Of a DNA stretch of 64,000 nt, positions 100-64,000 are shown in pieces. A model generated the notes under the pieces. That model did not search any database, was not told the DNA's origin, and saw only the letters and a program-made list of their open reading frames with translations. Positions within the stretch are counted from its first letter, which is position 1. Every line of letters starts with the position of its first letter. This stretch comes from Amoebophrya sp. A120. Taxonomy: Eukaryota; Protista; Dinoflagellata. The stretch covers positions 4,703,795 through 4,767,794 of the forward strand of contig CAJINV010000006.1 in the NCBI GenBank assembly GCA_905178155.1. The letters are read 5' to 3'. The translations under genes were made by a program, and so were the position numbers.

Positions 100-3000
100 A
101 CAACGGCGGCACCACCATTGATTTCGACGTCTTCTACAAAACACCGAATTTCGGCACCTACGCGCGGTTTTTCATCGTGCTGCTTTTCACTCTATCAACT
201 GTAAAAATGTCTGGGTCTGGAACATTCCGACACTTTTCATGCACGTTTTGCATGAGCCCTGATGTCTGTGATGCATGCCCTAGCATCACAGATTTTTTCG
301 GAGCTTCTTGATGCCTATTCCGCATGACAAATGCCCTCTCCGCGTAGCAAAAATTACATTGCTTTTGGTACTCATGCAATACAGATTTTTTTGGAATCCA
401 AATGCAGCATGACAAGTTGCATTCTTCCAGACACAGACACTTTTACATTTGATACACTCTAGAAGCTTGCCTCCGGTTTGCCATCGCGCCGCAGCGGAAG
501 CAGTTTTGGTTCCAGCCGAACAACGTCGCGGATATCATTTCGGTTTTGCTATCCTGTGCAAAAGTATCGTACTCCCACTCGTAGTTGTATATTGCAATCA
601 TGCATTACAAATTTTTTCGTTTTCCCTAAGGTCAATCTGCATGACAAATTCGATTTCTCAACATGGTGAGGAAATTTGTAATGCAATTCATGCTAGTTGT
701 GCGATGCTTTTGCTTTTGCTATTCATATTTGCCCTACTGGTGCAACAACGTTTGCCAGCTCCACGAGAACCTTTCCGTCTACTTTCACGTGATCAGCATC
801 TTCAGCAGCTTCTTCTGGCTCTTGAAGTTAACCCGCTACTTCTCCGGCTGGTTCTTACTCAGCCGAGCCTTAACGGACGCCGGAAGAGCCTTGATGGTGC
901 CCGTGTTTTTTCTCATGATCGTCGTCATGTGTGGAAGCTCACTGTTGTATCCAGGAAAAAATACACATTCTCATCCATTTTTGGCATTACAAACACTGCA
1001 AATTATGCATGTTTTGCATGACAAATTGGATGGGGATGGGTGTTTTTTCATGGATATGCTGCTCCTCTTCGAGAAGGCGCATGCGGAAAACACGCCCGCG
1101 CCGGTAATTACTTCCACAACGGATGAGGAGGAGCTTTGCCCGGAGTTGTCCGATTGCGTCACGATAGATTCTCTCTTCAAGGCGATTCACTACACGATTG
1201 TGTCTGTCGTCTCCATTCAGATCACCGAGGTTTACGGGAAAGATGTCGCGAGTAACGGGGGGAGAGTGTGGTCGGTGATCATGATGTTTCTCGGTGTGAT
1301 CTTTCTCTCCATGCCGATCGCGATCGTCGGCACCAGCTTTTCGAAAACGTGGTTTGAACAGGACATTATCATAGTGGTCGAAAAAGTCCGGTCCAGAATG
1401 CGGCAGCAGGGGTACACGACGGACGATTTGCGGGAAGTCTTCAACGAACTAGACGAGGATGGATCCGGTTCGATTGAGTTCAACGAATTCAAACGGATGC
1501 TGGAGGCGTTTCACTTTTTTGGGTCTTTGGCCACTTGTCGGAAGCTATTCAACCACTTCGACTGCAACGGAACCGGGTCGATTTCGTACCAGGAGTTTGT
1601 TTGCGGAATTTTCCCCGAGATCATAGACGTAGATGAATTGCTGGAGTATGATGAGGAGTTGGAACATATCAGAGGAAAAAGTGGTAACGTAAACGGAATT
1701 TGTGATGTAGAAAATGCATCACAAAACGTGCCCAAGTTTGTCATGCGTAGCATGCATACTAGGCAAAATCTGTCATGCATATTTGCAATCTATGGAAACC
1801 GTTAATGTTACCGCTTTTTTGTTTGATAGAACAGATGGAGAACGCGAAAAACTCTTCGGGGTCGGCGACGGCAAGTCTTTTTTCCGGAGAAGAGGAAGAG
1901 GATTGTTCCGACGATTCCGATTTCGACAGCAATGATGAAGACGAGGAGGGTGACAAATCTGGAGGTTCTTCCGACAGCGCGTCATTACCCTCTAGCAGCA
2001 ACTCGTCGGGGGCGGGAGAGCAGCAGGGACGAGCTGCTGAGAAGAGGAAAAAGAGGAAAAATAAACGGAGTAGAAGATCAGGAACTACAGCTGGAGCTGG
2101 TCTAGGTCTAGGTGCAGGTAGTGTTAATACCGGCAGTACGAGCATGCCCGGCAAGAAAAAGACAACCTCGTCCTCGGGCGGTGTAACATCTACAGGAAAC
2201 AATAAAGTCGTGAACTTCAACACAAATCTCAACGTGACAAAAACCTTAAGCGCCGAATCCGCCGCGCCGGGTTGGACGTCAATGATACCGACGATCAACA
2301 TTTTCGGGCACACTGCACCGTCGGCGAACGGCAATGCTAATAATGCGGCGAATAGTAATTCTGTTGCAACGACGAATCAAAATTTGACCACTTCTATTAT
2401 GTCCACAGACAGCAAAGCGCTGGGCGGTGGTATAGTTCCGGGAATTACAGCTGGCAACGCAACCACGATGAGTAGTACAACAGCTGCCCACTGCTCTGAC
2501 TCCCTGGACCTCAAAAAGCACGCCTTTTCATCCGTGACGAAGCAGTTTAGCACTGGGAATAATGCTGTCACAAATCAGATTTCCAGTGGAGGCGGTGTGG
2601 GAAGCAGCAATTTCTCCTCCATGATCCACCACACAAATTCCTCTCCAAAAAACGCGTTTTTGAAAAAGGGTTTTCAACGGTCCAGTACCAGTGGCAATTT
2701 GGAAATCGGCGGCTCAGGAGGCGCTTCTTTAACCGGCGGCGGAGCAGCCGGGGGGATACACGGTGGTGGTCACCACGGCGGGTTTAACCAAGACCATCAC
2801 GGAGCAGGCGACATTGGTAACGCTCACGTGAACAAGCAGGGCAGTCTTGGCCGCGGCGGAGGTCACCAGAACGTTGGAACAAGCGGTCCGCCTCGGTTTC
2901 AAAATCAGTTCATGGGCGGTGGAATGAACCGCGGGTACGGGAACATGGGGATGTACGGCTACGGACCGGGAGGCGGTATGGGGATGATGAGTCAACACGG

Positions 3001-3568
3001 GCAGTTTGGCGGGGGCGGGAGTAACAATATCGGCATGATGAACAACGACGGAGGATCTGGAGGAGGCGGTTTCAATAGCAACAGCAACAGCGGTCATCCT
3101 CATCTTCACAACAATTCCACGCTCCAGCAACAACTGTCCGCGAATAAACTACTATGAGAGTCAGTGCACAACTCCCTCTCCCCCTCATTTGTATAGCATG
3201 AACGGCAATGCAAGCATCTGCAAGAGTGCCGGTTTTGCATGACAGATTTGCACCGGATTGTCGTGCTACTTGGGCTACCAGAACTTGTCATGCAAACAGT
3301 ACCAAGAGACAATGCGTGGATTGGGTATTTTGCATGACAAATAAGGGGGAGGGGCGGGGGTTGTGCACTGTCATAACTACAGGCGAAAGTGAGTCTGGTG
3401 GAAAACAAGTGCAAATCGATAGAAGAGGACATGAAAAAAATCTTGAAACACTGTCAGGCGCAGGCGAGTGAGATTGCACGGTTGCAACAGATGAACGTTG
3501 TGATCATGCGGACGCACTCGCCGACGCCCAGTCAGGGAAGTAACAGGAGTGGGATTGTTTGTGCGTGA
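1..3568 (+). CDS. Voltage-gated K+ channel-like 6TM ion transport protein with two EF-hands and a long low-complexity/coiled-coil tail (5' end outside the window)
   Basis: After removing introners 193-454, 550-727, 948-1056, 1667-1828 and 3153-3375 the frame reads LLFTLEACLRFAIAPQRKQFWFQPNNVADIISVLPYW (S2-S3), LLKLTRYFSG (S4 end), S5, pore, S6 FLSMPIAIVGTSF, and EF loops DEDGSGSIEFNEF and DCNGTGSISYQEF. Stop TGA at 3566-3568. Confidence 0.85.
193..454. mobile_element. Introner family B (TIR TATCAAxTGTAAAAxTGTCTGGGTCTGG)
   Basis: DR cactc/cactc. Confidence 0.92.
550..727. mobile_element. Introner family A (TIR TATxxxTGCAAAAGyATCGTACT)
   Basis: DR tttgc/tttgc. Confidence 0.9.
948..1056. mobile_element. 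Introner family C (TATCCAxxAAAAAA..CCATCCCCATCC)
   Basis: DR tgttg/tgctg. Confidence 0.85.
1667..1828. mobile_element. Introner family D (TATCAxAGGAAAAAGTGxTAACG)
   Basis: DR gaaca/gaaca. Confidence 0.9.
3153..3375. mobile_element. Introner family E (TATGA..GTGCACAACTCCC)
   Basis: DR actac/actac. Confidence 0.9.
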
Positions 3569-5513: not shown

Positions 5514-8500
5514 ATGTCTCGTTCCGCCAGAGCATCTCTGGCAGACCAGGCCTGCTGTACACCGAAGAAGCACCTCCTCCAGAACAAGTCTTCCACATCA
5601 TCTTCGTGTTCTCTGCAAGATATCTTTCGCCAAAACGACGTCGATCAAAACCAAACATCCACCGCCCCCGACGATATCAACTTCCGGTCCCCCGACGTCA
5701 GCCACAAGCAGCGCCTCCGCGGCACAAAACCACTGCTAGATCAACAGTTGGCTGCGAAGGCACTTCTTGTTGGTGAAAAGAATCGAGCATTGGGGGAAAA
5801 TGAAAAACAACTGTCGACGTCGGTAGAAGATGCTGACAAGAAGAAGAACTACCACAATACAAATGCAAATCACACGACGACTTCTGCAGGAGCAGGTTCT
5901 TCCGCCGCTCTTTCTGCGCCAGGCGACTACAGGATGAACAAGAACACTCTCCTCGCCAAAGCAGGCGCCGCCTCCACCTCCTCATCCGCCAACCGTGATT
6001 GTTCCCGAAGCCGCGCCCGGCCCAGCACGTTGCAGTCCGAGCGGTACCGGCGCATGGAGTGGGCGCCCGCGAGTGGATATCGTGAGGAAAAATCCCCCCT
6101 CCCCATGTCAAAACGAAGTTTCTGATGCTGGATTTCCGTACACAAATCAGATTTGTCTTGCAGTAGAGGACTGCAGGCATATGCCAAGCCTCAGTCGAGA
6201 GGTTTTGACGTAGGCACCTAGCATGACAAACGTGTATGCTCTAAGCCCAACAGCGTCACAAACTGCCTGCAAAATGCGGGGCGATCTCTGAACTTGCCTT
6301 CTTGCAAGACAGACAGGATTTGAGGTCACAAATGCTAATGCACGTCACAAATTTTCGGACGGATAAAGTTTTCAATATGGGGAGGGGGGATTTTTCCTTA
6401 CGATAGTGGACGGAAGTTGGAAAAGCAGGGCGTGAAGAACGTGCACAAGTCGCTCTTCCCGAAAAAGAAGCGAAAACGTCGCACCCTGCGGACGAAAAGG
6501 AGATTGGAATTAGCTTCGGGTCCGGGTCGTGCAGAAACAAGATCAGATGCGGCAAGAGGAGCAGGAGAAGGACAGGAAAGCGAAAGCGGGGAGAACGCAA
6601 TAATAAGAAACCCCGGCTCTACTTCATTGGCGGCAAGGAATCCGAATCGGAACAATCGCAGAGGACTACAGCAGGGCGATTTGTTTCCACGCGAGGAGGA
6701 TCTACTTCGTGGAAGAACCAGTAGTGACGACGAGGAGGAGAATGACGACGAGTCCTCAGATGAACTATCAAATCGAAAAATGTCTGGGTCTGGAAGAATG
6801 CAAGATTTGTGATGCTGGTTTTCCATGACCCATGAGGTCTGGAATGCGAGACCCAGCATGACAGATTCTGTGAGAGTTCTACCATGCCTATCCTGCATGA
6901 GAAACTCTCTCTCAACTTGGTCAAAAGCGGACAGCTTTTGGCACTCACGCAACACAGATTTTTGCATCGTTTAGATTTCGCATGACAAGTTCTAATCTTC
7001 CGGACCCAGACATTTTTACATTTGATATGAACAACAGTCTTCTGATTCGTCTTCCGTCAGCTCCTGCTCTTTTCGGTCAATACCACGAGGTGGAACATCA
7101 AATCTAGCTTCGAATAGGGTATTACGGAGCAGTAGATCTCCGTGCTCCTCCGCCCGGGTCTTTCCGTGCAGTGGGAATAGGGAGGAAGACAGGCAACAGA
7201 ATAAACTTTCCCGTTGCTCTTCCGAGGAAGACCTGCTCGAGCCGGTATTTAACAGTGGCTTGCGGGATGTCGGGGCGTCGAAACAAGACGACCGGAGAAA
7301 TGCTAGCAGTGGTAGCCTAGTTTTTCCGAACAACAGGCCGCAGGGTGGACGTCAGCAGGCAACAAGAACAACTTCCCAACTTCTACAACAAAACCCGCGA
7401 CATCCCACCAGACACTCCTCCTGCCCCCGCAGCTCACCCGGACTGGACGTCCAGATCGGAGGGGTTGTGAACAATAAAGGCGGCAAGATTAACAACTACC
7501 ATCGGAAGAAAAAACGGGAGCCGAAGTCCGATATGAAACGAAAGTCCACGCTGGCGCAGCTGTTGGTCGAGGGTGGGTATGCATTGCAAAAGCATCGTAC
7601 TAAGTAGTAATTGCATTACAAACTACTTGCATAGCATTACAAATGAAATCTGTAATGCTGTTTCAGCTTAGTAAGGAGATTTGTCATGCACCATAACAGC
7701 AATTACTACGAGTATGATACTTTTGCAGAGCATAGTGGGTCGAAGGCGAAATTAGTGGGGAAGAGGAAACTGTTTGCGTCGCCGGATGAGGCAGCGAAGA
7801 AGTTGAGGTAAATAGATACGTTTGTGGCTTCTAGTAATTTCAAGCTCTTGCTCTCATGCATCTACTCAGCATGATAAAATGGTATCACTTTTGAAACTCT
7901 GCATGACAAACACCAGCCGCGCCTTCGCCTCTGATGTCGAGTCTTCCAGCGCGGCTTCGAGCGCCGTGAACTCCCTTATGCTTGGAAAAAAACCTGTCCC
8001 CACCCGCATCTGATTTGTCATGCAAAAAAAACATGAAGCATAGCCTGAAATCCAAATCTGTGATGCTCAAAAGAGTTGCGAGGTTTCGGTTTTTTTTCCT
8101 CTGGATATCCCCCGTGCCGAATTTCCAAGTCAACCCCTGGCTCTTAGACGTCAGCTCCAGTGGAGGGGAAGAAATTGTGTCGCCGGCTGCTAATCATCTC
8201 GCGAGGAGGGCACGATCGGTTGGAGCGCATCAACATCCTGTAAATTTGTTTTGGATAATGTAAAAATCTTCAGCAAGCAACACGTCGTCGACGCTTAAAA
8301 TATTATGATGCTGGAATCTTCTTCTTTGTGGGTTGGCAGCTGCCGGCGTAGGCTAACATTCTTGAACAGTCACTGCCAGTACCATTACAATCAACATCAT
8401 CAAATACAGGTTGACGCCAGCACGACGGAGAGCCAATCTAGCATCGCAAATCCTGGTCCGCCAGCTTCTAGCAGTTCCACTGCGACGAGCTCTGCTTGTT

Positions 8501-9675
8501 CTAGCTCCTCCTCCGCGTGGTCCTCGCATGCGGAAAGCAGCAGCGCCGCTTGCTCCACCTCCGGCGCCCAAAATACTAACCCACTCGACCTTCCCTTTCT
8601 CGACCACGTCACGGCAAACAAAAGCAAATCGGTCTCGAAGGACTCCTCCGTGTCCGCACGGTCTGTGTTCCAGAACAGTTGCAGGGCGCTACCTACTTCC
8701 ACGACCGAGTACAATACGCCAATATCGCGACGAACGTCGCTCAGCCCGGACCGACGGCCACCTGCTGCTCCTCTCAGGTGTCGCAACATGTCTTTGGTGA
8801 GCGGGGCCGGGTCTTTGGCCGCGAAGTTCCGGGAGTCGGTTGCAGCGGCACGAGCAAGTCCGTTGGGCAGGTAAGTTTTTTCTTCAGTCGATTTATTCGT
8901 CATGCAAGCAGCGGATTTGTGATTGTGAAACCTAATTAGTCGTCGAGTTTCATGACAAAGAACTCTACAAACTCCATCCAATCAAGGTTGCAACTACTCG
9001 AGGAGAAGTCGCCGGAGGTTGTGGTTGGAGTGTCTCTGTCCGCCGCGAATCACGATAAAGCGGCCGACGTGGTGAAATCGAATGAGGTGCAGCATGACAA
9101 AAAATCCAACCTTTTCCCTCTTTCCCCCTCCGGGTCGAAAAGTTACCCTCCGTCCGCAAGCGCTTCTCCGTCGTGTAATGGAGGGGATGGAAATTATACC
9201 AGTGGTGATGGAGCCACAAATGGATTGGGAGAACAGGTGGTTTTCAGGAAAACGGAACCACTGGAGCCCATGGTAATATGATGAGTTTCTTCTTGGTTCT
9301 GGAGTTTGTCATGCAGAAGTCGTAAAAAAATGTATGTAAATACCAAAACACCAGAGGAATATCAAATAAAATGCAAGGTTGTGCTCAAAACTTGCAAGCA
9401 AGTTTCAAAAATCTTGAAAATGCAACACACAACAACAGACCGGCGCCGTCGTTTCCGGCGGGGAAGTTGTGAAAATTGCGCCGCAAAGCGTCGACAGGAA
9501 GGAAATCTTGGATTTGGTGGGACGAGAGCAGAACATGACGGATTCCGAAAATAACGCGTTTGAAAACCTCTTCAATGGGGGAAAAAAAGCGGTTCGGAGA
9601 ACGAGTAAGAATCCGGGAATAACAAATGACGAAGACGCGCCGAAAAGACGCAGGCTGGAATTGGAAGAGGAGTGA
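5514..9675 (+). CDS. Hypothetical low-complexity Ser/Arg/Lys-rich protein (9 exons)
   Basis: Frame is continuous across introners 6078-6405, 6766-7027, 7578-7734, 7977-8107 and GT-AG introns 7808-7916, 8240-8409, 8871-8986, 9273-9438. It ends ...PKRRRLELEEE*. Start ATG uncertain. Confidence 0.6.
6078..6405. mobile_element. Introner family F (TATCGTxAGGAAAAATCCCCCCTCCCC)
   Basis: DR gtgga/gtgga. Confidence 0.9.
6766..7027. mobile_element. Introner family B
   Basis: DR tgaac/tgaac. Confidence 0.9.
7578..7734. mobile_element. Introner family A
   Basis: DR gtggg/gtggg. Confidence 0.9.
7977..8107. mobile_element. Introner, singleton TIR (tatgcttggaaaaaaacc / ggtttttttttcctctggata)
   Basis: DR tccct/tcccc; frame restored. 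Confidence 0.75.
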
Positions 9676-10564
9676 GTTGGTAAAGGGGGGACGGGATGCC
9701 GGGTAGTACAACATGAGCAACAAAGAAGATTTCTAGATATCGTTCTTTGCGCTTCTTTGTTGTTTAGACAAGTGTGACGATGTTGACTCTAAGGCTACGT
9801 GCGGCCAGCAGCAAGAAATTTTATGATTCGTACAACTTTCCAAATGAAATTTTTTATGGCAAGTGGCCAAAATAACTAACAATAGTGCGGTAGACCCGCA
9901 GGATGAATCAATGACCGTGACGATGTCCTTTCGCATAGAAAACTTTTTAGAACCGAAAAAGCGATAATGAAGAAATCCATATAACTGGATTTGAAAAGTT
10001 AAAAGAATATATGCGCAGCTCGGTAGAAGAACAAGAACGAACAGTGAAGAGTTGTCGCAGAGCAATAGCTTGCATCACCTGCTGCTCAATTTCCTTTTTC
10101 ATAGGCTTGTGAAGATGTTTCATGACTTGACAACTTCGAGCAGTCAAACTTACCTCCTTGTTTCTTGTATCAACAACTTTATAAAACGAATTTACTGACA
10201 ATTATGTGCTTTCATCGCGGATCCATACGAGGAAGATTCGATTTTTTTTGTACGATTTCCACAACACGAAACAGTTTATCGCTTCATTGTAAAATTTGAA
10301 TTTGCAACACCGAATAAGACAACAGTTTTACCTTTGTTAAGCCGCACGCAAACTAGAGGACGAACATCACCGGATGAAGACGCTCCTTGTATAATGTTTC
10401 AGGTGTTCCTTGAGAGGTGAGAGCTGAAGAACAAGGTGGCGACCACCGGGGTCTTCATGATCATGTATAAAAACAGAATTGTTGGAGGCTAGATGATATA
10501 ACCAATAGCAGGGACAGCGAGAGGAAGAGGCGCGGGGGTATAATTGCAGCGATACGAATTCTTA

Positions 10565-10640
10565 TTTTTGGTTCAGCCGCCCTACCATTTTGGTTCAGCC
10601 GCCCTACGTATATTAGCCATTTTGGTTCAGCCGCCCTACC
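10565..10640. repeat. Three copies of ttttggttcagccgccctac
   Basis: Read directly from the sequence. Confidence 0.85.
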
Positions 10641-10879
10641 CAGGATCGGTTGTTGTTCCACGAAGTATGCTAACGCGCCGGACACAGGCACCACTATCGA
10701 TGTAAAATGAAAGGAAAAGAAACTATAGCAAAATGACCGCAGCAGCAGCACGCACGACAAGTCGAGGTCGGGTAGTCCGTCAACGGCGTGATGATTTTCG
10801 TTCGGGTGGTGCGGCCGGACTTTTTGTACTGAGAATTGCATAAAAGGAGGTCCTAGTATTATAGTACTAGTGCGGATGG

Positions 10880-11147
10880 TATCAACTGTAAAAATGTCTG
10901 GGTCTGAAAGATTCGGACGCTTGTCATGCACGTTTTGCATGATCTTGATCTATGATGTCTGTGATGCATACCCTAGCAACACATATTTTTTGAGGGCTTC
11001 TTGATGCGTATTCCGCATGACAAATGCCTTCTCAGCGTAGCAAAAGTTGCATTCTCTTTGGTACTCATGCAATACAGATTTTTTTGGAATCCAAATGCAG
11101 CATCACAAGTTGCATTCTTCCAGACCCAGACATTTTTGCATTTGATA
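10880..11147. mobile_element. Introner family B at a start codon
   Basis: DR gatgg/gatgg. Confidence 0.9.
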
Positions 11148-11148
11148 G

Positions 11149-12271: not shown

Positions 12272-15200
12272 ATGACGTCTCCTACGCCGGATGCTATTCC
12301 CGCTCTATCTCTCCCGCAAGAAGAACCGCAAGAGCAGCAGCAGGAAGAGCTTCTCCACGATCAAGATTCCGGTCCGCGCGACGTGTCTATCTCCTGAAAA
12401 CTAACCATCCCTAGTATGATCCAATTTGTCATGCAAAAGTAAAAGATGTAGTCAGTTCTGTTTTTGTCATGCATGATGATGCAGAAAATGGATGGGGATG
12501 GTTCATTTTCAGGGAATAATGTCTTTCCAACTGGAAGAAGCTGTATCAAGTGTAAAAAAGTCTGGGTCTGGAAGGTTGGAGCTTGTGATGCTAACTCTGG
12601 ACTCTGAAAAAATCTGTATTGCATGATCACCAAGAGGAGCCTACTTTGTGCTAAGGGGGGAAGGCATTTGTCATGCGGATTAGGCATCAGGAAGCCCCCT
12701 TAGAATCTGCGATGCTAAGTCATGCATTACAGACATCCTGGGCCATGCAAAAGAAGCATGATAAACCCGGCAAAATTCCAGACCCAGACATTTTTGCATT
12801 TGATAAGCGGTAATCGAAAACGAAACCTCCAAAAGCAGCATTCGAGAACCCGAAGACGGTGTTGATGATGAACGCGGGAACCATCGTCCTGGCGATAATT
12901 TTTCCAAACCCGCAACAAAAACGACACGTACACGAAGTCGAAAGATAGCACCCACAAGTAGCTCACCATATTGTTCTAAATCGGCATCGTCTTCTGCTCC
13001 AAAATTATTCACCGCGAATGGCAAGGAGAAAAGCGGTTGGCAAGCAAACAGAAATGATCGGCGAAGAACGACAAAGAGCACGGCAGCGGGGGATCATGAT
13101 GGTGCCGATGCGGACAGCGATGGAGGTGGCAGTAGAGCTAGTGGCTCTACTCCTCGCGAGATGAACTACGAGAGCAGCAACGGCTCTTCCCTCAGTCTGA
13201 CTTCTTCATCTGACGACAATGCAAAAGCGCAGAATGATCACGACAATCGTCCCCAGCCTCCAGAACTACCGTGTACAGGAGCGCCTAGAAATAAAGGTTC
13301 GGGCGAGCAACTGAAATTTGTTCTGCGAGACCGAGGGAGCAAAAGTAAAAAACGCAGTACAGGTGGTGGTCACGGTCAACATCACGCTCGTGGAACGGAT
13401 GTGTGTGGAACAACCGGTGCAGGAAAGAAAAACAAAAAATCCTCTCCTCACAAACCTTCACATCCACAACATCGAAGGTCCAAGCCAGCCACATCTGGGC
13501 GCACCACGGCGAGAGGCCACCAGCATGGGAGCAATAAGCCATCATCTACTACAGCATCAAACCGTCACGATCATCACAAAAACACGACCAATAAAGAGGA
13601 CGATTTCACAATCGCGATGCGGTACCTGGTGAAAGCCCCCATTCGAGCTGCAAGATTTTGCTTCTCCGAGATTTTCGAAGGGAGTGGCGTGTTTTTGGAG
13701 GAAGACGAGGAGGATTTTTACAAGTACAGAAAGAACACCGGCAGGACAAGGCGGAGAACAACAAGTCGGGGAAGAAGCACCAGTGAAAGAAGAGCTGCAC
13801 CACGACGAGCACCACCACGTATTCATCGAAGGATGAATAAACAAGAGCCTTCATCCAGTCCCGAAATCACCACTTCAAAGCGCGGCGGTGGCAGAGCTGG
13901 AAATCGGGAAGATGATGTTGATCGAAACCGAAAGCTACGATTTGATGAGGAAAATAAACGGAGAAATTTCAATGCAGATGAATCCACAGGAGCTCCTCCT
14001 GCTCCCCTTCGACTAGGGCTAACCGACGATGAGCAGAGCTTTCTGATGAAGCACAAAAACGAAGAAACTATTTCGTTTCAAATGCCAGGAGGAGGACAAG
14101 AAGACCCCATCAATCTCGATCGGTCGGGGTTCTTGAACAACAGTTCGGTGAACAGAAGCCGCGGGACCATGACGAATAGCATAAGTACAACATCCAGCAA
14201 TAGCTTTGTTCGTCGAGTATGAAATGCAAAAGCATCGCGCTAGTGGAATCGCATGAAAAATTCCCTCAGCATGAAAAATGGAATTTGTAATGCGGATTTA
14301 GATTATTAAGGAGGAGATTTGTAATGCATGACTTCTACGAGTACGATACTTTTTCACAGGATAACGAGGAGCGCATGACAACTTTTCCGATGATCCAGCA
14401 GCCGCCAGCGAAATTTCCAGTTTTGTGGACTTGCAGCTGGCGGCGGTATTGCACCAGAGAATAGGGAGAATTTTGAAACAAGCAAAGAAACGAACTGGTA
14501 ATTCTTCCTCCTCTTCCGCATCAAGAACTACATCGGACGACTTGCAAAAAGAGGACCAAAAAGCGAGGAGAGCAGTTTTCAAAATCCTCGAAACCGCGCT
14601 GGCCACTGCTTGCGCGACGAGTACGAGCGCGAGTAGTGGCAAGAAGTCTGCCAGCACCAGCAGTACTAGCGGTAATAAAGCCACAACCTTCAACCCCACC
14701 CGCCTGCAGTTCGCGGCAAAATTGGCCCAGATTCAGAACAAAACCTTCCTCGCGTTTCTTCTCCACGTGTATTTCGATTTCGAACCTGGCATGGGGACGA
14801 GTAGTTGGTTTGGGAACGTGCATATGCACTGCAAAAGTATCGTACTCGTACTAATTGGACTTATGCATTACAATTTTTTTTCTTAAGGTAGATCCGCATT
14901 ACAAAAAATTTAATCTGTAATGCTGAGCAAATTTGTATTGCGATTTCTACTAGTACGATGCTTTTGCAATCCATAGCGCAACTCCCGTATTTCTACGGAA
15001 CCAGTTCCTACGTCGGGCTAGAAACCGGGGCATCAACAGCGGGACGAAGTGGAGGCGGGGGTTTAGGTCTTCGGTGTACTAGCAGTAGCACCTCCGCTAG
15101 CACCAACTCGATAAACGTCAAGTCCCTTGTCGACACGCTTTCCTTCGTGTTAAAAGACCGGATGTATCCACAGTAAATTTCATCTTCCCGTACTACACGT

Positions 15201-22836: not shown

Positions 22837-25800
22837 ATGGCATCATCCTCCCCCTCCCCCCTGGAAACTTTCATCCAAGCCAACCACGCCCGCCTTTCCC
22901 AGGATATCACAGGAAAAAGTGTTAACGTTTAGCGGAATTTCTGATGCGGCAATGCTAATGCATCGCAAAGCGTGCCCAAATTTGTCATGCATAGCATGCG
23001 CACTAAAGATAGATAGATAGAAAGGCTAAATTTGTGACGCATGGCTGCAATCTGTGAAAACCGTAAACGCTAACGCTTTTTCTGGTGATACCGGATGCCC
23101 TCGCAGTCGGCCTCGCCCGCGGGATCGGCATGTTCCCCGACCCGGAAGGAACCTCAAACACAGACACAGAGAACCAAAATCACGGTCGCAGCAAAGCGAA
23201 TTCCCTCGGGTACGCCCTGACCCCCCACCCGATCCCGAAAAACGGCTACCGTTTTCTGGCTCAGGAAGGCACGCCGCTCAACGTTCTGCTCTACGACGCG
23301 CTTTGTCACGAGCCGGAGGAATTCCTCTACCCCGCGCTGAAAAAAGCCGCAGAGGTGGATGAAATTACGAAAAATTTGATCGACATCGGGAAGAAAATCT
23401 ACAACAACAGCACACGACAGTATAAGAATGAACTCCGGATGTTCATCGTCCGGAACGACTTCATGATCGATCACGATTTCACGCTGAAGCAGATCGAACT
23501 CATATCATTTGTAAAATCGTCCCCACCCGCCCAGAGTCAAGGTTGAAAATGATCTTCTGCTGGACAAATCCACGAGCTGTGGTTGTGGCGCATGACAAGT
23601 TCCGGATCGAAGTGTAGTCGTGTTCAGCACCTAGTTCGGCAGCATCACAGATCCAAGACATTTGCCTGATTCGAGCATCACAAGTGCAGAAATACCCTTG
23701 GAAAACATTTGTAATGGGGCTCCACATGAGAAACATTGTAAGCATGCAGATTTGCATGACAAATCTGCGGTGGGGACGTTTTCACTCAGGATAACCCAAC
23801 ACCTTCGCGGCGTCGTTTCAGGGCATGAGCGACGAGGTGCAGTGGATGCAAGGGTATTTCGCCAAAAAGTGGTTTGGAGGAAGAGCTTATCAAATGTATA
23901 AAATGTCTGGGTCTGGAAGGTTGGCTTGTGATGCTAACTTTGGACTCTAAAAAAATCTGTATTGCATGACCAGCAAGAGGAGTCTAGTTTGTGCTATGCG
24001 GGGAGGGCATTTGTCATGCGGAGTAGGCATCAGGAAGGCCTCTAAAAATCTGTGACGCCATTACAGACATCCTGGGTCATGCAAAATATGCATGACAAAC
24101 CCGGCAACATTCCAGACCCAGACACTTTTGCACTTGATAGACCTGAGAACCAGAATCTTCTCTCCCATCATCACCAGCCGTGCTTCGCGAGTCAGGAACA
24201 GCAGCAGAAAACGATCATCGCCTGTCGAAAGGGGGAGCGCGAGCAGGTGGATGCGGTAGAAGACGAAATATTCGACGTAAACGCGGAGTTTGCTCAACCG
24301 CAAACCAGAAGTCCATTTTCCTCCACAACGATGGCGGGTTTTGGAACGGCGTTTCGGGATCTGAGGACGGCCTATGAGGCGATGTTTTTCAGTTCAACGA
24401 CAAGCAGAGCTGGTCCTAGCAACGGGAACGGCGCATCAACATCGCCATCTGGTCGAAGATCAGCCTTGACCAACAGTTCCTCAAACAACCCCTTTGCCGT
24501 TCTTTTCATCGCGGATGACGACGAACGAAACGAGCTGGATCACAGGAAGATGTACGAAATGCAAATATGTGTACTTGGTCTGGAATGATCCGAGTTTGTG
24601 ATGCGAATTCTACATCATGACAAAATCTCTCATGTATGGCCAGCAAAAGGCCAGACTTCTTGTCACCGAAAGAGGAGATTTGTCATGTGGATTATGCATT
24701 GGTAATGGTCTGCAGATGCACCAGTGGTGTACCTGCTCGAAGTCTGTGATGCTAGGGCTTGCATTCCAGGCGATCTGGGTCAGGCAAAAACCGCACGACA
24801 AATCTTGCATTCTTCCCTTCCGAGACCACATATCTGCGTTTGATAAGATGGAGCTCGCCATCCTAGAGCACAGCGACATGATCTGCATCCGACGGTCCTT
24901 TGCCGCGGTTTCGGAAGAATTCGCCAACGGAGATTTGGTTCTGGAAGAAGGGAGCAACGCCCTGTACTTTTTCGGGACGGAGGGGAACGGGATGTTAGCG
25001 AGCAGCGGTACGAAAATACATGCGGATTTGCAAGCACAGCATCAGCATGCTCCCTCCCTGAAACCAAAATCCGCAGTGGAAATATGAGAATGCACAACTT
25101 CATCCCCTCGACGTCCCCGTCATTTGTCATGCAAAATACCAAATCCCCCCTTTGCCTGTTGGCACTTTTCGCATTACACGTTCTGGAACATCAAGAAGCT
25201 CAAACAAAACCACAAGCCTTGGTCGTGAATTTGTCATGCAAGATCTGCACGGTTGCCAACGCTTGTATTGCTGTTTGTGCCATGCAAATGATTAAGGGGG
25301 CTGTGCACCTTCATAGGAAATTGTCGCTGTCTACTACCGCTCCGGTTACTGGCTATCCTGTGCAAAAGTATCGTACTCGTAGCAATTGCAATCATGCATC
25401 ACAAATTTTTTTCTCAAGGTAAATCCGCATCACAGATTTTACTTCTCATGCTGAGAAAATTTGTAATGCATTTATACGAGTACGATGCTTTTGCAATTCA
25501 TACTGGCCAGACCACTACAAAAACCCGAAAAACCCGGCGGCTGATTTTTGGGGCGTCCGGTACTTTTTGGAGAAATCTCGCGCGGCGAAAGTTCCCTCTG
25601 TTCTCGGCCAACTGGTCGGGCAAAAGAAGATCCAGCAACTGCTAGCACTGTACGCCAGCGCGAACTTGGACTTCAGGATACGAAGGATTTCCGCAAGTGC
25701 TTCTGCTGGTGCTGGTCAAAGCATGACAGACCGGACCTCAGCGTACCAAAGCCGCAACACAAGTTCCGCGACGATGATCGTGAAACACAGCTACCAAAAG

Positions 25801-38621: not shown

Positions 38622-41600
38622 ATGACCCCGAAGAGTGTTTTGGCTTTGTACTCGATTATTACCAGCTTCATTGCGTCAACCACCTCAGTGTCTTCAACAT
38701 CCAAGCAGGAGGTTCTTCCGCCGCAAATCTTCGTCCGGGCTGCAGAACAACTTTCTTCCGTCGGTCGTCCACAAGAGCCAGACCCCGCGCAAGCGGCTCA
38801 CGCGAAGAAAGACCACGACGCTCACCTCCATAACAAGGGGAGCGCACGAACCCCTCGCCACCGCGGCGGTCGATCTTTACAAACCTCCACTTCTCTTACG
38901 GAACGTGGAAGCCGGCGCAGAACGTTCCCGCCCACCCCAGGAACCTTATTGGAACAACGTGATTCCGCGGTTGTTTCGTCCGACGCTGAGGCGGAAGAGC
39001 CCTCTGTTGAAGGTGGAGCTTCCGCCGTCAGGCCGCATCATCACAACACGAACAGGAACATAAATCACGATAACGAAAATTACAAGCAGCAGCGAGACAC
39101 TGAAAAGACCATGGTGTTATCGCAGCAACTCGCCGGGAATAATTACCCGGATCAGCCAGGAGTTGCCAGTTCCTCCCTAGCAGCGGATCAACATTCTGCG
39201 ACCGCTAGTACGGGCGGCACAGCGACTCACCATACTTCCAGCGGATCTTTCCGACCCGGGAATTTCTGGGTCCAGCCACTACTGTTCTCGGTCATCGCCG
39301 GCGCGTCGACCTCCATCGGCGCATTGATCGTCGTTCTGAATCAGGGGCGGATGACAAACCGGATGATGGCATTTTCTCTCTCCCTGGCTTCCGGCGTGAT
39401 GACCGCCGTGTCGCTTCTCTCTTTGCAGGAGGTTTTCGCTAAGGAAAAACACGAACAGGCGCATACGGTGAAAGAGATTTTCGGCTCTCTGTGCTTCATC
39501 GCGCTGGGGGCGGTGTTTTACTTTATGTTATCCAAATTCGCGCTGCCGGACACCCAGGACTACGTTTTGGATGACGTAGAGCAGCAGCAGTTCAAAGCGA
39601 GGCGCTCCGCAGGTGGAACTACAGGTCTGGACCCCTTTTCCAGCAAGGATGACCCCGACAAACAACTTTCCCATGACACCCAGTGCCAGTCCGACCCGGA
39701 CAACAGTTCCCACCCGAACTCCGACCCGGAGAAAGCGGCGATTTTAGGAAAAGAGCACCACCATCGGACGATCTTGAGCCCCGATGTGGTACGAGTGCAC
39801 TCCGGGTCTTCCATCCTTCAAAACGACACAACGGCCGCGGGGAAAAAAATCAGCTACAGCGATTCGCCGCCTGCATGGGTGGGGGCGGGTGGTTCATCTC
39901 CGCGGGGACGCGGGCCGAATAATTCGAAGGCGGCCGCAGCAGCTATGGCGTTCTCAAATGTTACATTCTCAACTGTTGCATGAATTTTCGATGCAAGGAT
40001 GGCAAAAGTAAAAGGAAGGACCTTGCGCGTGTTGCATGACAGATTTGGAACAGATTCTAAGCCTGGTTGGCCGTCTGAGAATTTGTCATGCGAAACAGCT
40101 TGATGGCGTCGGTAGTCAAGGCAATTTTGCATGACAAATCATGTAACAGTTGAGAGTGTAACAGTTGAGAACGCCATAGCAGCTCACCAGCTAGAAGGAC
40201 CAGTAGTAGAGACATCAAGAACCATCTCCGAGCACAGCAGCAGCAGCACGAACGCAACTGCTGCGGATCACAGGATGATCCGGGTCTTAGCCAGCCCAAC
40301 CTCAGTGTCGACCCCCCGGACGGAACAGGAAATGCACATCGCCGGAGGTGCGATTCTTGCGGCAGAGCAAAATACTTCTAACCAAGGCGATAATAATTCC
40401 AAGTCCACCTCCGTTCTCTCGTCTTCCTCCAGCCACCAGGGCGCTCTTGCGACTAGGAAACGGTCGTGGCGAATCACGATGCTATTATTTCTCTCCCTCT
40501 TGTATGCATTGCAAAAGTGTCTGGGTCTGGAAGAATGCAGCACTTGTCATGCTTGTCTGGCATGACGCTTGGATCTGTGATGCGTAAGCAGGAACGGGGC
40601 CTCCTGCCTGTCATGCAACAACGCAGTTTGCCATGCAGAAAACGAAGCACATGGCACGTGCAAAAACTTGTCATGCTTGGCTGCGTATTGTAGTGCGCCC
40701 ACGATTCACAGATTTGCATCACAAGTTTCCAGACCCAGACATTTTTGCGTTTGATATCTTGCTTCACAACTTCCCGGAAGGATTAGCCGTCGCGATTTCC
40801 ACTCTGGAAAACACGCAACTCGGGATCACCATAACTTTCGGGATTCTAGTCCACAACATCCCGTATCAAGTGTAAAAATGTCTGGGTCTGGAAGAGTGCG
40901 CGATTTGTCATGCTGTTTTTCCATGACCCATGAGGTCTGGAATGCCGGAGCTAGCATGACAGATTCTGCGAGACCTTTCTAATGCCTATCCTGCATGAGA
41001 AACTACCTCCCGACTTGGTCAAAATTGGGCGACTTTTGGTAATCATGCAACACAGATTTTTGCATGCTGCAGATTTAGCATGACAAGTTCCAATCTTCCA
41101 GACCCAGACACTTTTACATTTGATATCCCGGAGGGGATTGCGATCGCGGTCCCCTGCCTGGCAGCGAAGCCGAACCAACCGAAACTCGCCTTCTGGCTCG
41201 CGAGTCTTTCCGGCATCGCCGAGCCGATCGGGGCAGCGCTTGGGCTGCTCTTCGTATCAAATGCAAAAATGTCTGGGTCTGGAAGGAGGCCAGATTTGTC
41301 ATGCAGCTTTTCCATGACCCATGAGGTCTGGAATGCGGGATCTAGCATGACAAACTACGTGAGGTCTTTGCCATGCCTATGCTGCATGAGAAATCCCCTC
41401 CCAACTTGGCCGAAAGTGGGCAGCTTTTGCCACTCATGCAACACAGATTTCTGCATGATGACGATTCAGATTTAGCATGACAGGTTGCAATCTTCCAGAC
41501 CCAGACATATTTGCAATCCATACTTCGTGTCCGTGAGCAACGGGAATTCCAAAGACAACACAACCCTGCCGGTGAAACCGTGTTTAGCTTTCGTGTATCA

Positions 41601-52564: not shown

Positions 52565-52931
52565 TATCGTGAGCAAAAACGTCCCCACACCAGAGTCAAG
52601 ATGGGACATCTGCTAGACAAATCAACCAGCTGTAGTTGCTTCGCATGACAAGTTTTGCCTCGTACTGCAATCCTGTTTGAGGTAGGTCAGCAGCATCACA
52701 GATCTGCCGATTCCAGCATCACAAAATCCAAAACACGACTAGAAAATGCTTCTCATGGGGCTCCGCATGAGAAACTTTTTTGGCCCGCATGAGAAACTTC
52801 TCATGGGCTCCGCATGACCCACCCGCCCTGCGTGTCAAGCCATCTGCGGCCATGGTACAATGGGGGGGCAAAGTGTGTCGCATTTTGTTTAGCATGACAA
52901 CTCTGGGGTGGGGACGTTTTTACTCAGAATA
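52565..52931. mobile_element. Introner family I (in captured fragment)
   Basis: DR ccggt/ccggt. Confidence 0.88.
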
Positions 52932-62000: not shown

Positions 62001-64000
62001 CGTACAGGCACAGATGAAGGCACAGAAGCAAATGGAACGGGAGAAAGCCGCTGCCGCTGCCGCGCAAAATGAAGACCAAGGTCAAGCTCCTGGAAAGGAC
62101 GGCGCAGAACAGGCCCAGACTGAAGGTTACCCGGCGACAGATGGAGCGCAGGCCGTGCAGCCGGAGCCGAAGCAAGGGGAAGGGCGAGATGTGGACGACA
62201 GTGGTGCCCCTGCGCCGCGACCTGCTGCTGCAGCAAGCGCAACTGATGTAGAAACTGGAACTTCTCAGACCGAGATGGGAGGCGAACAGCCGCAACGAGA
62301 CAACACAGAGGGTGTCGCAAGAGAGCCAGACGATGCCCCTCCGGAGTCGAACAAGTGTACCGGTGTTGCAGCTGGTCCAGAACCTGCTTCAGTGCAGGAC
62401 ACAGCTCCTTCAACGGAAGATACCGCCACGACAACCTCCTCGATTTCCAAATCCAAACACCTCTCCCGTGCCATCCGCTTTTTCGTGCATTCGTTTCCCA
62501 TGCTGGAAAAACCGATGACCGTGTGGCATCACCGTGCGTCGGAGCGGAAGAACGGCGTGTTTCTATGCGTGGCAAATTATAAAGCATCGTACTAGCAGAG
62601 ATTTATATAAGCAATGCGACTCGCATTGAGTCGCAAACCGGTCGCGGCTTGTCGCATTGCTCGCATTGCCCGCATTGCTCGCAAATCGCGAGGGTCTGCC
62701 AGCAGTCAGGCGCGCGGCAATGAAATCCCCGCCATGCCGTCGCGATTCGCGAGCTACACGGCAGCGCACTGGCCTGCAAGTACAAAACTGGTTATCCTGC
62801 CCTGGGGCTTCTGTAGTGGCGGCTTCGCTCTCTTACCCAGGAGCGCAGTGTTTAGGTTTTAGATTTTTCTCGGGGAACAAAACACAAACCATGATGGAAG
62901 GCTGCCGTCGCGGGGCCCGCGCGAGGTCTAGCGAAGCAGGTGCAGAAACGACGACGGTGTGGGTGTGTGTTCGATGTTTCGGCGCACTTGCGGCGCATCT
63001 TGTTGGATGACCTGTTTTCACGTTCACCTGCCGGCACCCACCCCGACCGAGATACTAGGTAGCTTCGTACGTTAGATAGGAGTAGGACTATGGCGCCCAA
63101 CTAGGATCCGAGCGTGGGCACTCGCAGACGAACTTGCGAGAACGACTCGCAACACTTGCGACAGATCCGCGTGTTCGCAACTCGCAAGACCTCGGATCGC
63201 TGTCGCATTGCTCGCAAATCGCGGCCGGAAATTCCTTATATAATTGGCTGTACTAGTATGAATTGCATTACAAATTTGCTCAGCATGAGAAAGGGAATTC
63301 GTAATGCTGATCGACCTTAGGAAAAAACGATTAAGATTTGTATATGCAAAACTCACATTCATACGACAGGAGTACGATACCTTTGCAATGCATAATTTCA
63401 GTTTTTCAACAAAAAACACGACACGGACGCGAATTTGCGAAACACCTTCCACCCCTACGACCAAGTGAAGTTTGGGGGCCCGCACCAGCCTAATCTGCAC
63501 GAGGAGGTAGAGTTGAGCAAGTTTTTGGACACGCTGTTGCAGGTCAGGGATCCAGCAGTCGTGCCGTCACAAGGAGCAGGATCAGGGCAATTGTCGTCCA
63601 AATTATCGGCAGACGGACACACAGCACCTTCAGAAGGTGGGGGTTCTTCAGGAACGGATTATACCAGAAGTTCCGAAACTGCGACTGAAAAAGACGCAGT
63701 TGTACTAGAGGCACCACAGCAATCAGAGTCGGAACTACCCGGCGCTCTGATCCACGCCCGGCCGACCATTTTCACGATTCTCGGCGTGGACAAAAACGAC
63801 AATGGCTTGGCCACGGGCTTGACAAAGTGGGACGGTGACGGGAACAAAAGTGTTTGCCCCTGGGATCTGAACGTCAAAGTGAATCTGCACGATCATCAAA
63901 GTCTTGTTGGGCGCCATCAGCATGACAAAATCAACAAAAAGCATTACCGAATAGAAATCTCCCCCTGGCGCTGGCCCTATTGCTATCGGGTGGTTAAGAT
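59007..64000 (+). CDS. Large secreted hypothetical protein (3' end outside the window)
   Basis: Signal-like LLLRLFISSLALLKASLFLL. Frame continuous across 59680-59830, 59940-60095, 61585-61746 and 62564-63394, and open to the window end. Confidence 0.6.
59680..59830. mobile_element. Introner family A
   Basis: DR aatcc/aatcc. Confidence 0.9.
59940..60095. mobile_element. Introner family A
   Basis: DR gaagg/ggagg. Confidence 0.88.
61585..61746. mobile_element. Degenerate singleton introner
   Basis: Weak IR; DR cagca/acgca; frame restored (KQH|EEVELDAM). Confidence 0.55.
62564..63394. mobile_element. Introner family A hosting a nested TIR element
   Basis: DR gtttc/atttc. Confidence 0.85.
62596..63250. 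mobile_element. Non-autonomous TIR element, 655 bp, nested in an introner
   Basis: cagagatttatataag / cttatataattggctg; 6-bp TSD tactag; internal cgcattgctcgc repeats. Confidence 0.8.

Follow-up and report, generated by a model that had tools for sequence, protein, structure and literature searches.

A constrained 12-base word lies at regular spacing in nearly all introners of an Amoebophrya A120-like genome

Results

Occurrence of the motif

The 12-base word GCAT(G/T/C)ACAAAT occurs at regular spacing in nearly all transposon-derived introns (introners) of an Amoebophrya A120-like genome, and its fixed bases are under purifying constraint, while its center base is free apart from an excluded A. 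With moderate confidence, we read GCAT[G/T/C]ACA[A/G][A/G]T as a cis-element of the introner superfamily with TAT...ATA ends and 5-bp target site duplications (TSDs), namely, as a constrained array of double-stranded DNA sites with the mobilizing enzyme as putative reader.

The window analyzed here is a stretch of 64,000 nucleotides from A120. A sequence-only reading of it had proposed that GCAT(G/T/C)ACA recurs in introner families and in GT-AG introns, and the recurrence was borne out: GCATBACA was found 191 times on both strands of the window, compared with 7.18 ± 2.75 (maximum 15) in 100 dinucleotide-preserving shuffles, a 27-fold enrichment, and GCATGACA is the most frequent 8-mer. Sites named in that reading were recovered at 7901 (+), 9307 (−, preceded by TTT), and 15510 (−), and the one near 8950 is present as TCATGACA, a match at seven of eight positions. 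Throughout the 115.5-Mb genome, the 11-mer GCATGACAAAT occurs 24,689 times (12,440 and 12,249 by strand) and its reversed control 22 times (10 and 12), which corresponds to an approximately 1100-fold enrichment. Inside the elements, against a baseline of dinucleotide-matched resampling, words with a central G (GCATGACA, 243 observed versus 3.6 expected), T (GCATTACA, 122 versus 2.1), or C (GCATCACA, 134 versus 4.8) were enriched 28- to 67-fold, whereas the word with a central A (GCATAACA, 2 versus 1.7) remained at approximately 1-fold. The resulting consensus is hGCAT[G>C≈T, never A]ACA[A/G][A/G]T.

The motif was detected in 170 of 180 elements (31 clusters, at least 14 families), and the consensuses of all 14 multi-copy families have two to six exact copies. 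RNA-verified non-canonical introns contain 15 copies in 973 nt, and the single copy in 4209 nt of RNA-verified exons, at 9092..9099 (+), is at chance level (0.39 expected). The density in detected introners is 10.5 copies per kb, and the enrichment survives correction for composition.

Introners that carry the motif

The motif hosts are introners of a MITE-like type, flanked by 5-bp target duplications and bounded by inverted ends that read TAT…ATA. We used a strict set of 38 elements and a relaxed set of 180 (for which a Markov null yields 1). Most elements of both sets have ends of the TAT-N7-AAA type, and the families have in common TAT-N7-A-rich termini, 5-bp duplications, and the motif spacing, except that families F, H, and J start with TAT but have no A run. 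Of the 38 strict elements, 27 have a perfect duplication. With terminal inverted repeats (TIRs), a target duplication, a small size (109–405 bp), no coding capacity, and many copies, the elements have the properties of MITEs; 14 multi-copy families were found in 264 kb, and family 7 has at least 40 copies with 95 to 99% identity.

Joints in RNA-type contigs omit the element together with one copy of the target repeat. These contigs lack 7573–7734, 7972–8107, 10875–11147, and both introners within 12389–12804, all with non-GT-AG borders, and in silico removal of elements with one TSD yielded ORFs of up to 2814 codons. Because 292 of the 294 classifiable introners are located in a coding context, exact removal is essential for them.

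Farhat et al. (2021, BMC Biol, PMC7789003) described A120 introners as non-canonical introns with inverted repeats of TAT, 7 nt, and an A run, with 3- to 5-nt direct repeats spanning the borders and the potential to form hairpins; they belong to many strain-specific families and contain no transposase. The elements analyzed here are the same, with TAT-start inverted ends, border repeats, and non-GT-AG removal. That study covers the terminal repeats, and neither GCATGACA/TGTCATGC nor any shared internal motif appears in its text or supplement; the shared internal motif, its constraint, the lattice, and the strand symmetry are additions of the present analysis. Additional metagenome contigs stem from this organism or one almost identical to it and therefore enlarge the sample without providing independence.

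Arrangement of motif sites

The motif sites, two to seven per element, form a regular lattice. From each terminus inward, the first is reached after 32 to 45 nt, directly past the family-specific inverted repeat (at 72% of 344 ends, this distance is 30–49 nt), and further sites follow approximately 16, 32, or 48 nt apart. Neighbors in the same orientation are separated by 30 to 33 nt in 15 of 23 cases among the family consensuses and in 16 of 23 in a wider set of 12 cluster consensuses, and inverted neighbors by 15 to 17, 34 to 35, or 45 to 50 nt. The first site is directed outward relative to the end in families A, D, F, H, and J and inward in B; such family dependence is unusual for a fixed transposase-end geometry.

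The family A/0 introner at 193..454 (+), with TATCAACTGTAAAAATGTCTGGG... ends and TSD CACTC, has motifs at 267 (−), 283 (+), 322 (+), and 407 (+), and another at 10880..11147 (+; TSD GATGG), skipped in RNA contigs (10875–11147), has four. Three motifs each are present in the introners of family G/10 at 1667..1828 (+; TSD GAACA; 1716 (+), 1739 (−), and 1771 (−)), family J/4 at 3153..3375 (+; TATGAGAGTCAGTGCACAAC..., TSD ACTAC; 3237 (+), 3286 (−), and 3332 (+)), and family I/11 at 30753..30915 (+; TSD CGTGC; 30807 (+) and 30839 (+), which are 32 nt apart, and 30874 (−)). The family B/1 introner at 7578..7734 (+; TSD GTGGG), of which the RNA contigs skip 7573–7734, i.e., the element and one TSD, has four (7613 (+), 7634 (+), 7651 (−), and 7682 (−)), as do the family F/6 introner at 31718..31952 (+), where orientations alternate and which has a further copy at 39944–40178, and the family H/5 introner at 35448..35754 (+; TSD GAAAC), where all are exact. 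The RNA-supported non-canonical intron at 7972..8107 (+; TAT...ATA, TSD TCCCT/TCCCC) has motifs at 8016 (−) and 8059 (−), and the family D/3 introner at 6078..6405 (+; TATCGTGAGGAAAAATCCCCCC..., TSD GTGGA) has one exact motif at 6221 and degenerate copies. The presence of both orientations, which the sequence-only reading stated for almost every element, is not universal; family E/2 and three small families have a single orientation. The four motifs of the family E/2 introners at 23503..23793 (+) and 27372..27650 (−) are all (+), without an inverted partner, and all (−), respectively, and that at 52565..52931 (+; TSD CCGGT) has four direct copies.

GT-AG introns also contain the motif, as had been noticed from the sequence, with two exact copies in 561 RNA-verified nt (chance 0.05). 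In the RNA-supported intron at 7808..7916 (+), an exact motif at 7901 is preceded by one-mismatch copies 32 and 49 nt upstream, and its 3' part can be aligned with the family 7 interior (score 25, compared with a shuffle maximum of 20; z 7.2). The RNA-supported intron at 8871..8986 (+) has one-mismatch motifs at offsets 27 ("<") and 79 (">"), and that at 9273..9438 (+), also RNA-supported, has the exact antisense motif at 9307, 35 nt from its 5' end, and a one-mismatch sense motif 9 nt from its 3' end. Judged by sequence, GT-AG introns that carry the motif look like eroded introners.

Constraint on motif bases

The fixed motif bases change two to seven times less than the spacers at all depths of divergence, which answers the earlier call for a comparison of motif and flanking positions. 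Within each of six families, the frequency of non-consensus bases was 0.04 to 0.15 in motif columns and 0.17 to 0.36 in spacers (permutation p ≤ 0.0004). We also compared the closest independent pairs of copies, binned by identity. Changes affected 6.9% of motif and 17.5% of spacer positions in 104 pairs with 80 to 90% identity (p = 3e−55) and 4.4% and 8.7% in 47 pairs with 90 to 95% identity (p = 2e−8); at ≥95% identity, where only nine pairs were available, there was 1 change in 240 motif positions and 27 in 957 spacer positions (p = 0.03). In these nine youngest pairs, changes were depleted in the motif but not in the ends. The center base changes at the spacer rate or above.

Strand symmetry

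For 294 introners, a transcription strand could be inferred; 418 of their motifs are sense and 429 antisense, with mirror-image positions. Exact sense motifs are absent from 47 of the 294 introners and exact antisense motifs from 57. A separate count gave 200 sense and 206 antisense motifs, and in it 5'-proximal antisense and 3'-proximal sense motifs are equally retained (57 and 63). A direct-repeat family is inserted in both directions in ORFs (10 sense-only and 7 antisense-only). Furthermore, the family C/9 introner at 12388..12518 (+), whose two motifs (12427 and 12465) are both antisense to the + transcript, is spliced out in the RNA contigs; the family A/0 introner at 12544..12805 (−), separated from it by a micro-exon, is spliced as well. 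The symmetry and the spliced antisense-only element argue against a strand-specific RNA splicing code, and whatever recognizes the introns is therefore independent of a one-stranded internal RNA word. The idea that splicing in the absence of GT-AG could have its missing code in the motif is thus not supported for a word read on the RNA, and the guide RNA or RNA-binding protein proposed with it does not agree with the 47 introners that have no exact sense copy or with a one-orientation family inserted both ways. By contrast, the other part of that interpretation, a sequence-specific reader with a transposase or chromatin protein among the options, stands.

Discussion

Since the sites are alike on both strands in number, position, and retention, double-stranded DNA is the simplest form in which they could be read, and the recurrence of a single word in families whose ends differ calls for a reader with sequence specificity. 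This reader is most likely the enzyme, or an accessory protein, that mobilizes all of the non-autonomous families; its identity and the link to transposition are what we infer, and the enrichment, constraint, lattice, strand symmetry, and antisense-only splicing are what we observed. The role of the shared motif array and of the TAT-N7-A-rich tips would lie in transposition, and the family-specific inverted repeats would need only to pair, forming the hairpin proposed for splicing. Descent of GT-AG introns from motif-bearing elements would best explain why they hold the motif.

Internal transposase sites have precedents in Ac/Ds (AAACGG hexamers), En/Spm (12-bp TnpA sites), and P elements (internal 10-bp sites, inside the 31-bp TIRs), and Sleeping Beauty and Tc3 have IR/DR ends. 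As in such subterminal repeats, the sites described here are short, lie just inside the TIR with several per end and in both orientations, are common to non-autonomous derivatives, and remain conserved as the spacers diverge. Unlike repeats of the Ac/Ds type, they are common to families with almost completely different terminal repeats, fill the whole element of 110 to 370 bp at a regular spacing of approximately 16 or 32 nt, and belong to elements that act as introns.

No autonomous TAT...ATA element was found in the 264 kb and 322 kb searched, where the long candidates proved to be introners that had received nested inserts and contained no Pfam domain; a transposase-encoding master that shares or binds the motif is thus putative. 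The genome has 30 rve domain matches, and of ten rve-domain loci (1.5 kb on each side of the domain), nine are motif-free and one has a single copy. Gozashti et al. [quoted passage not shown] Duplications of 5 bp would be consistent with an enzyme of the integrase type.

All families must also share the host excision machinery, so that commonality does not single out a transposase. It is possible, although unlikely, that the lattice is a strand-independent intron mark of the host, read after insertion by the non-GT-AG excision machinery and helping to define the intron; its readable form could be short RNA helices of motif and anti-motif within the intron hairpin, or a factor bound to the DNA could recognize it during transcription. 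The families would then have converged on the word or kept it, since only carriers would be tolerated in coding sequence, which agrees with the coding context of the introners and with the confinement of the motif to introns, including GT-AG introns. The nine youngest pairs, depleted of changes in the motif but not in the ends or spacers, hint at constraint after insertion and hence at a use by the host; a purely transpositional signal would not lead one to expect this, although the numbers are small (p = 0.03). Likewise, in the family 7 alignment, a GT-AG intron without recognizable ends has better preserved motif bases than spacers, but this alignment is anchored on the motif itself. In the family A introner at 40864..41125 (+; TSD TCCCG), the end stem continues into the subterminal motif pair (RNA fold z −8.9), yet a helix requires complementarity and not one fixed word across families, the center base has no pairing requirement, and the single-orientation families, whose motif copies are mostly unpaired in folds, are inserted both ways in ORFs. 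We know of no host reader of such a mark.

Quite unlikely, in our judgment, is a structural module inherited from one ancestral foldback-like element, in which the motif would survive as the stem of nested hairpins with no sequence-specific reader. Inverted neighbors 15 to 17 nt apart form local hairpins, and 78% of motif bases are paired in folds compared with 61% of other interior bases; however, stems allow compensatory change, and yet every family retains the same seven fixed bases amid scrambled spacers. A central A is excluded despite being able to pair. Pairing modules for nested stems, which the sequence-only reading also considered, were recovered in part: in minimum-energy folds, 38% of motif copies pair with another copy, but none do in family E, where the end stem of the introner at 27372..27650 forms and the motifs of the direct-only array have no mutual pairing. 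As pairing alone can do without one fixed word in all families, stems explain only part of the pattern. Kinship is likewise partial. With ends trimmed and the motif masked, 19 of 91 family pairs have z > 3 (f12-f13, 15; f3-f5, 7.3), and f3 and f5 have sites at identical coordinates, whereas approximately 70 pairs have no residual similarity. The families had been described as having no other interior similarity, which mostly holds, but f12-f13-f8, f3-f5, and f4-f5 are still related, and the family consensuses are therefore partly non-independent. The non-conventional introns of euglenids also lack GT-AG and have ends brought together by pairing; to our knowledge, they have no repeated internal word or lattice.

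A strand-specific RNA signal is very unlikely, whether it resembles a branch site (U-B-A-C), acts as a GCAUG-type intronic splicing enhancer, or is targeted by a guide RNA; on this reading, elements would have copies in both orientations so that either insertion direction splices. Rbfox (U)GCAUG enhancers and branch sites are read on a single RNA strand and are sense-biased. The motif resembles them as a short intron-restricted word whose commonest variant contains GCAUG and whose U-B-A-C is similar to yUnAy, but it has no sense bias, its T and C variants break GCAUG, which is missing from approximately half of the copies because the center varies, and the A that would make the best classical branch site is the sole excluded base. 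Each of the four RNA-verified GT-AG introns does have a sense motif-like site 8 to 29 nt ahead of its 3' splice site, and the outward/outward layout of six families places a sense copy approximately 40 nt from the 3' end in either orientation; against this stand the absent sense excess, the equal retention of 5'-proximal antisense and 3'-proximal sense motifs, the introners without an exact sense copy, the one-orientation families inserted both ways, and the spliced antisense-only element. U1 was reported missing (PMC7789003), and U2 gave no match with Rfam RF00004 or with three patterns of its conserved 5' region, but the complementarity of U6, of which ten copies were found, to the motif was no better than chance. 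Finally, a neutral relic or composition artifact, for which the remote kinship of some families is the only argument, is already refuted by the enrichment over shuffles in the window and within elements and by the lower rate of change at motif bases.

Amoebophrya A120 and A25 are an extreme case of transposon-made introns, with more than 60% of introns lacking GT-AG. If the lattice conferred intron identity, which we consider doubtful, it would license the exact removal of introns without GT-AG where U1 is reported missing. A constrained 12-base word with tens of thousands of copies is a concrete handle on the movement and removal of introners: it defines a superfamily without recourse to the variable ends, can be used to hunt the autonomous element, and readily suggests itself as bait for pull-downs with DNA or RNA. 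The motif separates what must be read from what must pair, i.e., the ends, and its strand symmetry narrows the search for the splicing mechanism.

Occurrence of the motif and its carriers

The window is eukaryotic nuclear DNA with a G+C content of ~50% and comes from contig 6 of an assembly that totals 115.5 Mb in 401 contigs. GCAT[G/T/C]ACA has 191 matches on its two strands, compared with 7.18 ± 2.75 in dinucleotide-preserving shuffles, and the commonest 8-mer in the window is GCATGACA. Genome-wide, the 11-mer GCATGACAAAT occurs 24,689 times and its reversed control 22 times. The recurrence noticed in the sequence-only reading was thus borne out, and the motif coordinates that it gave were confirmed in the window. 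Alignment of all the copies lengthened the motif to hGCAT[B]ACA[A/G][A/G]T[T/c].

The window is crowded with short elements that start with TAT, end with ATA, have inverted ends of 20–35 nt, and are flanked by 5-bp direct repeats. They match the A120 introner elements of Farhat et al. 2021 (PMC7789003), whose inverted repeats consist of TAT, seven less conserved bases, and an A run, with direct repeats of 3–5 nt over the borders. The introners themselves are already known. The internal motif is mentioned neither in the text or supplement of that paper nor in the available parts of the 2025 PNAS (PMC12130899) and G3 papers, although it may be described elsewhere; a literature search with the motif string matched only primers and unrelated sequences.

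A detector based on TAT...ATA ends and a 5-bp repeat was run on 264 kb, including 200 kb more of the same genome, and found 180 elements, compared with 1 in Markov-simulated sequence. These elements formed 31 clusters, 14 of which were multi-copy families. At least one exact motif copy was present in 170 of the 180 elements (usually 2–4), every family consensus carried 2–6, and the density inside elements was 10.5 copies/kb, 47 times the expectation. Relative to dinucleotide-matched resampling of element interiors, the variants with G, T, and C at the centre base were enriched 67-, 57-, and 28-fold, whereas the centre-A variant was not (2 versus 1.7 expected); the one-mismatch forms GCAA[B]ACA and GCAT[B]AGA were also enriched, by 16- and 13-fold. 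Introners are absent from the G+C-richer region (53–56%) at 42000–50500, where the motif occurs just three times, at scattered positions; this region also contains a near-perfect palindrome (48337–48564), whose 109-nt arms are 85% complementary and 10 nt apart.

When the detected elements and one repeat copy were deleted, reading frames as long as 2,814 codons opened, which is an independent line of evidence that the elements are exact introns. Among 294 classifiable introners from the window, two further stretches of the genome, and metagenome loci, 292 had at least 60 stop-free codons continuing on both sides after element removal, and only 2 lay in a clearly non-coding context; introners are almost confined to coding sequence. 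The 306-bp introner of family 7 (TATTACAGTGAAAAATGCCCCCC...) has at least 40 genome copies with 95–99% identity, so this family was active recently, and its inverted ends reach ~69 nt, far enough to take in the first motif site.

RNA-type contigs from public runs, whose RNA nature is presumed and is backed by their exon-only structure, were aligned to 7400–13399. These contigs skip introners from three families (A, B, and C) and also another intron with TAT...ATA ends, in each case together with one repeat copy. The non-canonical introns verified in this way hold 15 motif copies in 973 nt, and the verified exons hold 1 copy in 4,209 nt (chance 0.39), which agrees with the earlier impression that the motif is sparse in exons. 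A micro-exon at 12519–12543 separates the introners 12388–12518 and 12544–12805, and only 13 letters stand between the two joints in the RNA contig. Two raw RNA-seq runs (2026, labelled as the same species as the DNA) gave only two reads each on 7400–13399; they probably come from another strain or stage or carry a loose label.

Constraint on the motif bases

In six families, motif columns were off consensus in 4–15% of copies, spacers in 17–36%, and ends in 9–13%, and the permutation p value was ≤0.0004 in each family; the centre base varied in 17–46% of copies. To come closer to recent change, we then relied on closest-pair comparisons, in which each element is compared only with its nearest relative and is used once. 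They replaced a singleton-rate test for constraint after insertion, which is biased in variable columns and in which no difference stood out clearly for the large families. Metagenome contigs were added to enlarge the set; with repeats 96–99% identical to those of the genome, they stem from the same organism or one nearly identical to it, form no independent lineage, and hence offer no cross-species test.

At 80–90% pair identity (104 pairs), the motif differed at 6.9% and the spacers at 17.5% of positions (p = 3e-55); at 90–95% (47 pairs), the values were 4.4% and 8.7% (p = 2e-8); and at ≥95% (9 pairs), they were 1/240 and 27/957 (p = 0.03). In all three classes, pair divergence may mix change before insertion, in propagating lineages, with change after it, and the sample is ~1.5% of copies. 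The ends were less protected than the motif (0.65–1.2 times the spacer rate), and the centre base changed at the spacer rate or faster. Neutral decay, which the sequence-only reading had set against its own proposal, was therefore not what the six families and the closest pairs displayed; the motif is constrained. A search for duplicates that arose after insertion yielded only one identical pair.

Spacing of the sites and relatedness of the families

Among 344 ends, 72% have their first site 30–49 nt from the terminus; in the 14 consensuses, 24 of the 28 ends have it at 32–47 nt. In the family consensuses, same-orientation neighbours are 30–33 nt apart in 15 of 23 cases, where simple arithmetic from a mean spacing of ~45 nt gives an expectation of ~1; twelve cluster consensuses from the enlarged set gave this step in 16 of 23 cases. 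Inverted neighbours cluster at 15–17, 34–35, and 45–50 nt, and the pairs at 15–17 nt are small hairpins. The step of 31–32 nt was seen in at least eight family groups that have no detectable kinship, and the spacers between sites are conserved in length but not in sequence. About 32 bp corresponds to three turns of B-DNA. This lattice is an addition to the earlier observation.

The families had been described as unrelated inside. After 35 nt had been cut from each end and exact motif copies masked, ~70 of the 91 pairs of family consensuses were no more similar than shuffles, so the description holds for most pairs; it fails for f12 and f13 (z 15), f3 and f5 (z 7.3), f8 with f12 or f13, and f4 and f5, and z exceeded 3 in 19 pairs overall. 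In f3 and f5, the motif sites stand at identical coordinates despite unlike ends. On this evidence, the families form one superfamily with a deep, partly erased common descent, whose surviving traces are the motif and the extreme tips of the elements.

The motif in GT-AG introns

Four GT-AG introns on the + strand, at 7808–7916, 8240–8409, 8871–8986, and 9273–9438, are supported by the RNA-type contigs. Together they contain 2 exact motif copies in 561 nt (chance 0.05), which upholds the claim that GT-AG introns carry the motif; with 7 one-mismatch sites added, the simple arithmetic expectation is ~1.1. Each of the four has an antisense-oriented site toward its 5' end and a sense-oriented site toward its 3' end, the same outward layout as in introners but nearer to the borders. 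The intron at 7808–7916 has two sites 32 nt apart, and an alignment of its 3'-most 59 nt to the family 7 interior scored 25, when shuffles reached at most 20 (z 7.2); none of the remaining three verified introns matched a family. Introner-like repeats have been reported in 15% of canonical A120 introns (PMC7789003). The simplest reading is that the verified GT-AG introns are eroded or converted introners. Their sense sites lie 8–29 nt upstream of the 3' splice site, which keeps a branch-site role alive for the GT-AG class only, with low probability. Prediction of further GT-AG introns by ORF continuity was dropped as non-specific, because it gave like counts on both strands.

The main rival to an enzyme shared by the families is a host-level mark that labels introns independently of strand. 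Protection in the youngest pairs still extends to the motif but not to the ends, introns devoid of such ends retain the motif, and the host excision machinery is necessarily common to all the families; for these reasons, we retain such a mark as an alternative, albeit an unlikely one.

Pairing between motif copies

The sequence-only reading had also offered the motif as a pairing module. In minimum-energy folds, 38% of the copies pair with another exact copy, 35% have a different partner, in many cases a degenerate copy, and 27% stay largely unpaired. Folding is strong for an element of family A (z −8.9), whose end stem continues into the subterminal motif pair; for an element of family E it hardly exceeds that of shuffles (z −2.0), and no copy in this family pairs with another copy. 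Pairing is thus a frequent consequence of the presence of both orientations, but it accounts neither for one fixed word in all the families nor for the exclusion of A from the centre base. Covariation of the centre base in predicted motif–motif helices (59 of 94 Watson–Crick versus 28 expected) was set aside because the fold itself favours complementary partners and the copies are related.

Strand symmetry and splicing

The transcription strand of each introner was taken from the long ORF that spans the insertion point once elements are removed. The strands are thus ORF-based throughout, apart from the 6 kb covered by RNA contigs, where they agree with the direction of the GT-AG introns. If the word had to be read on the pre-mRNA strand (branch site, enhancer, or guide-RNA target), one would expect sense copies to be in excess or better retained, or one-orientation families to be biased in their insertion. 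In 140 introners, we counted 200 sense and 206 antisense copies at mirror-image distances from both ends (at 30–50 nt from the nearer end, 57 antisense copies on the 5' side and 63 sense copies on the 3' side), and 27 introners were without an exact sense copy and 29 without an antisense copy. The enlarged set of 294 introners gave 418 sense and 429 antisense copies, with 47 and 57 introners lacking an exact sense or antisense copy, respectively. Inside ORFs, the one-orientation family, which has 4–5 copies of the motif, is inserted 10 times sense-only and 7 times antisense-only, and a 109-nt family three times each way. None of these three signs was found in either the 140 or the 294 introners, and the element at 12388–12518, which has antisense copies only, is spliced out in the RNA contigs. 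The proposal that the motif is the missing recognition code for splicing without GT-AG, read on RNA, is not supported by these counts.

Complementarity between the motif and U6 snRNA, which has 10 genome copies, was at chance level (best 9/12 including G-U, reached by 17% of shuffled 12-mers). The Rfam model of U2 had no match in the whole genome, and three patterns for its conserved eukaryotic 5' region, which may misfit this lineage, gave nothing usable; four near-matches to them were rejected as not U2 by Rfam. In published A120 work, U2 was missed by BLAST in the assembly and recovered only from RNA contigs, U1 was not found, and >60% of introns are non-canonical (PMC7789003).

A putative reader of the motif

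The equivalence of the two strands makes a protein that reads double-stranded DNA the parsimonious candidate, putatively the shared enzyme of all the families. Subterminal repeats that bind transposases form constrained multi-copy arrays just inside the terminal repeats, as in Ac/Ds, En/Spm, and the internal sites of P elements. They are the closest kind to the motif, whose array is likewise element-borne, constrained, multi-copy, and just inside the terminal repeats. The motif departs from them in being regularly spaced, in being common to families whose ends differ, in having an array that fills the whole element, and in being borne by elements that are introns.

Gozashti et al. 2025 (PMC12130899) reported that A120 has TIR-flanked, intron-generating elements with integrase-like ORFs. 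The 5-bp duplications would be consistent with an integrase-type enzyme, whose link to the motif we infer. A search for long TAT...ATA elements returned no autonomous element but only introners with nested inserts, and the rve loci examined are too short to show element ends. One such introner, of family B with a perfect target duplication GCGCC, spans c2:13831–22464 in an extra genome stretch (L019:3831 to L020:2464 in the added loci; G000:C2:3013831–3022464 in the whole genome). A G+C-rich insert of ~8.5 kb splits its interior; the insert holds two identical 1,085-bp elements with TAC... ends, both with the target duplication TAAGC, and its ORFs of 176–351 aa had no significant Pfam match. 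The others lie in added loci, at L069:1547–2930 (family E) and L104:2079–3384. Nested in the former is a repeat of ~840 bp (L069:1628–2468; metagenome contig JACKZZ010008497.1) with at least nine genome copies of 93–99% identity and no motif copy. This repeat is apparently a different kind of mobile element, young and prone to insert into introners.

If an enzyme shared by all the families recognises the internal word together with the TAT tips, the ends would need only to pair with each other. Such an enzyme would explain why the ends are free to vary from family to family and the internal word is not.
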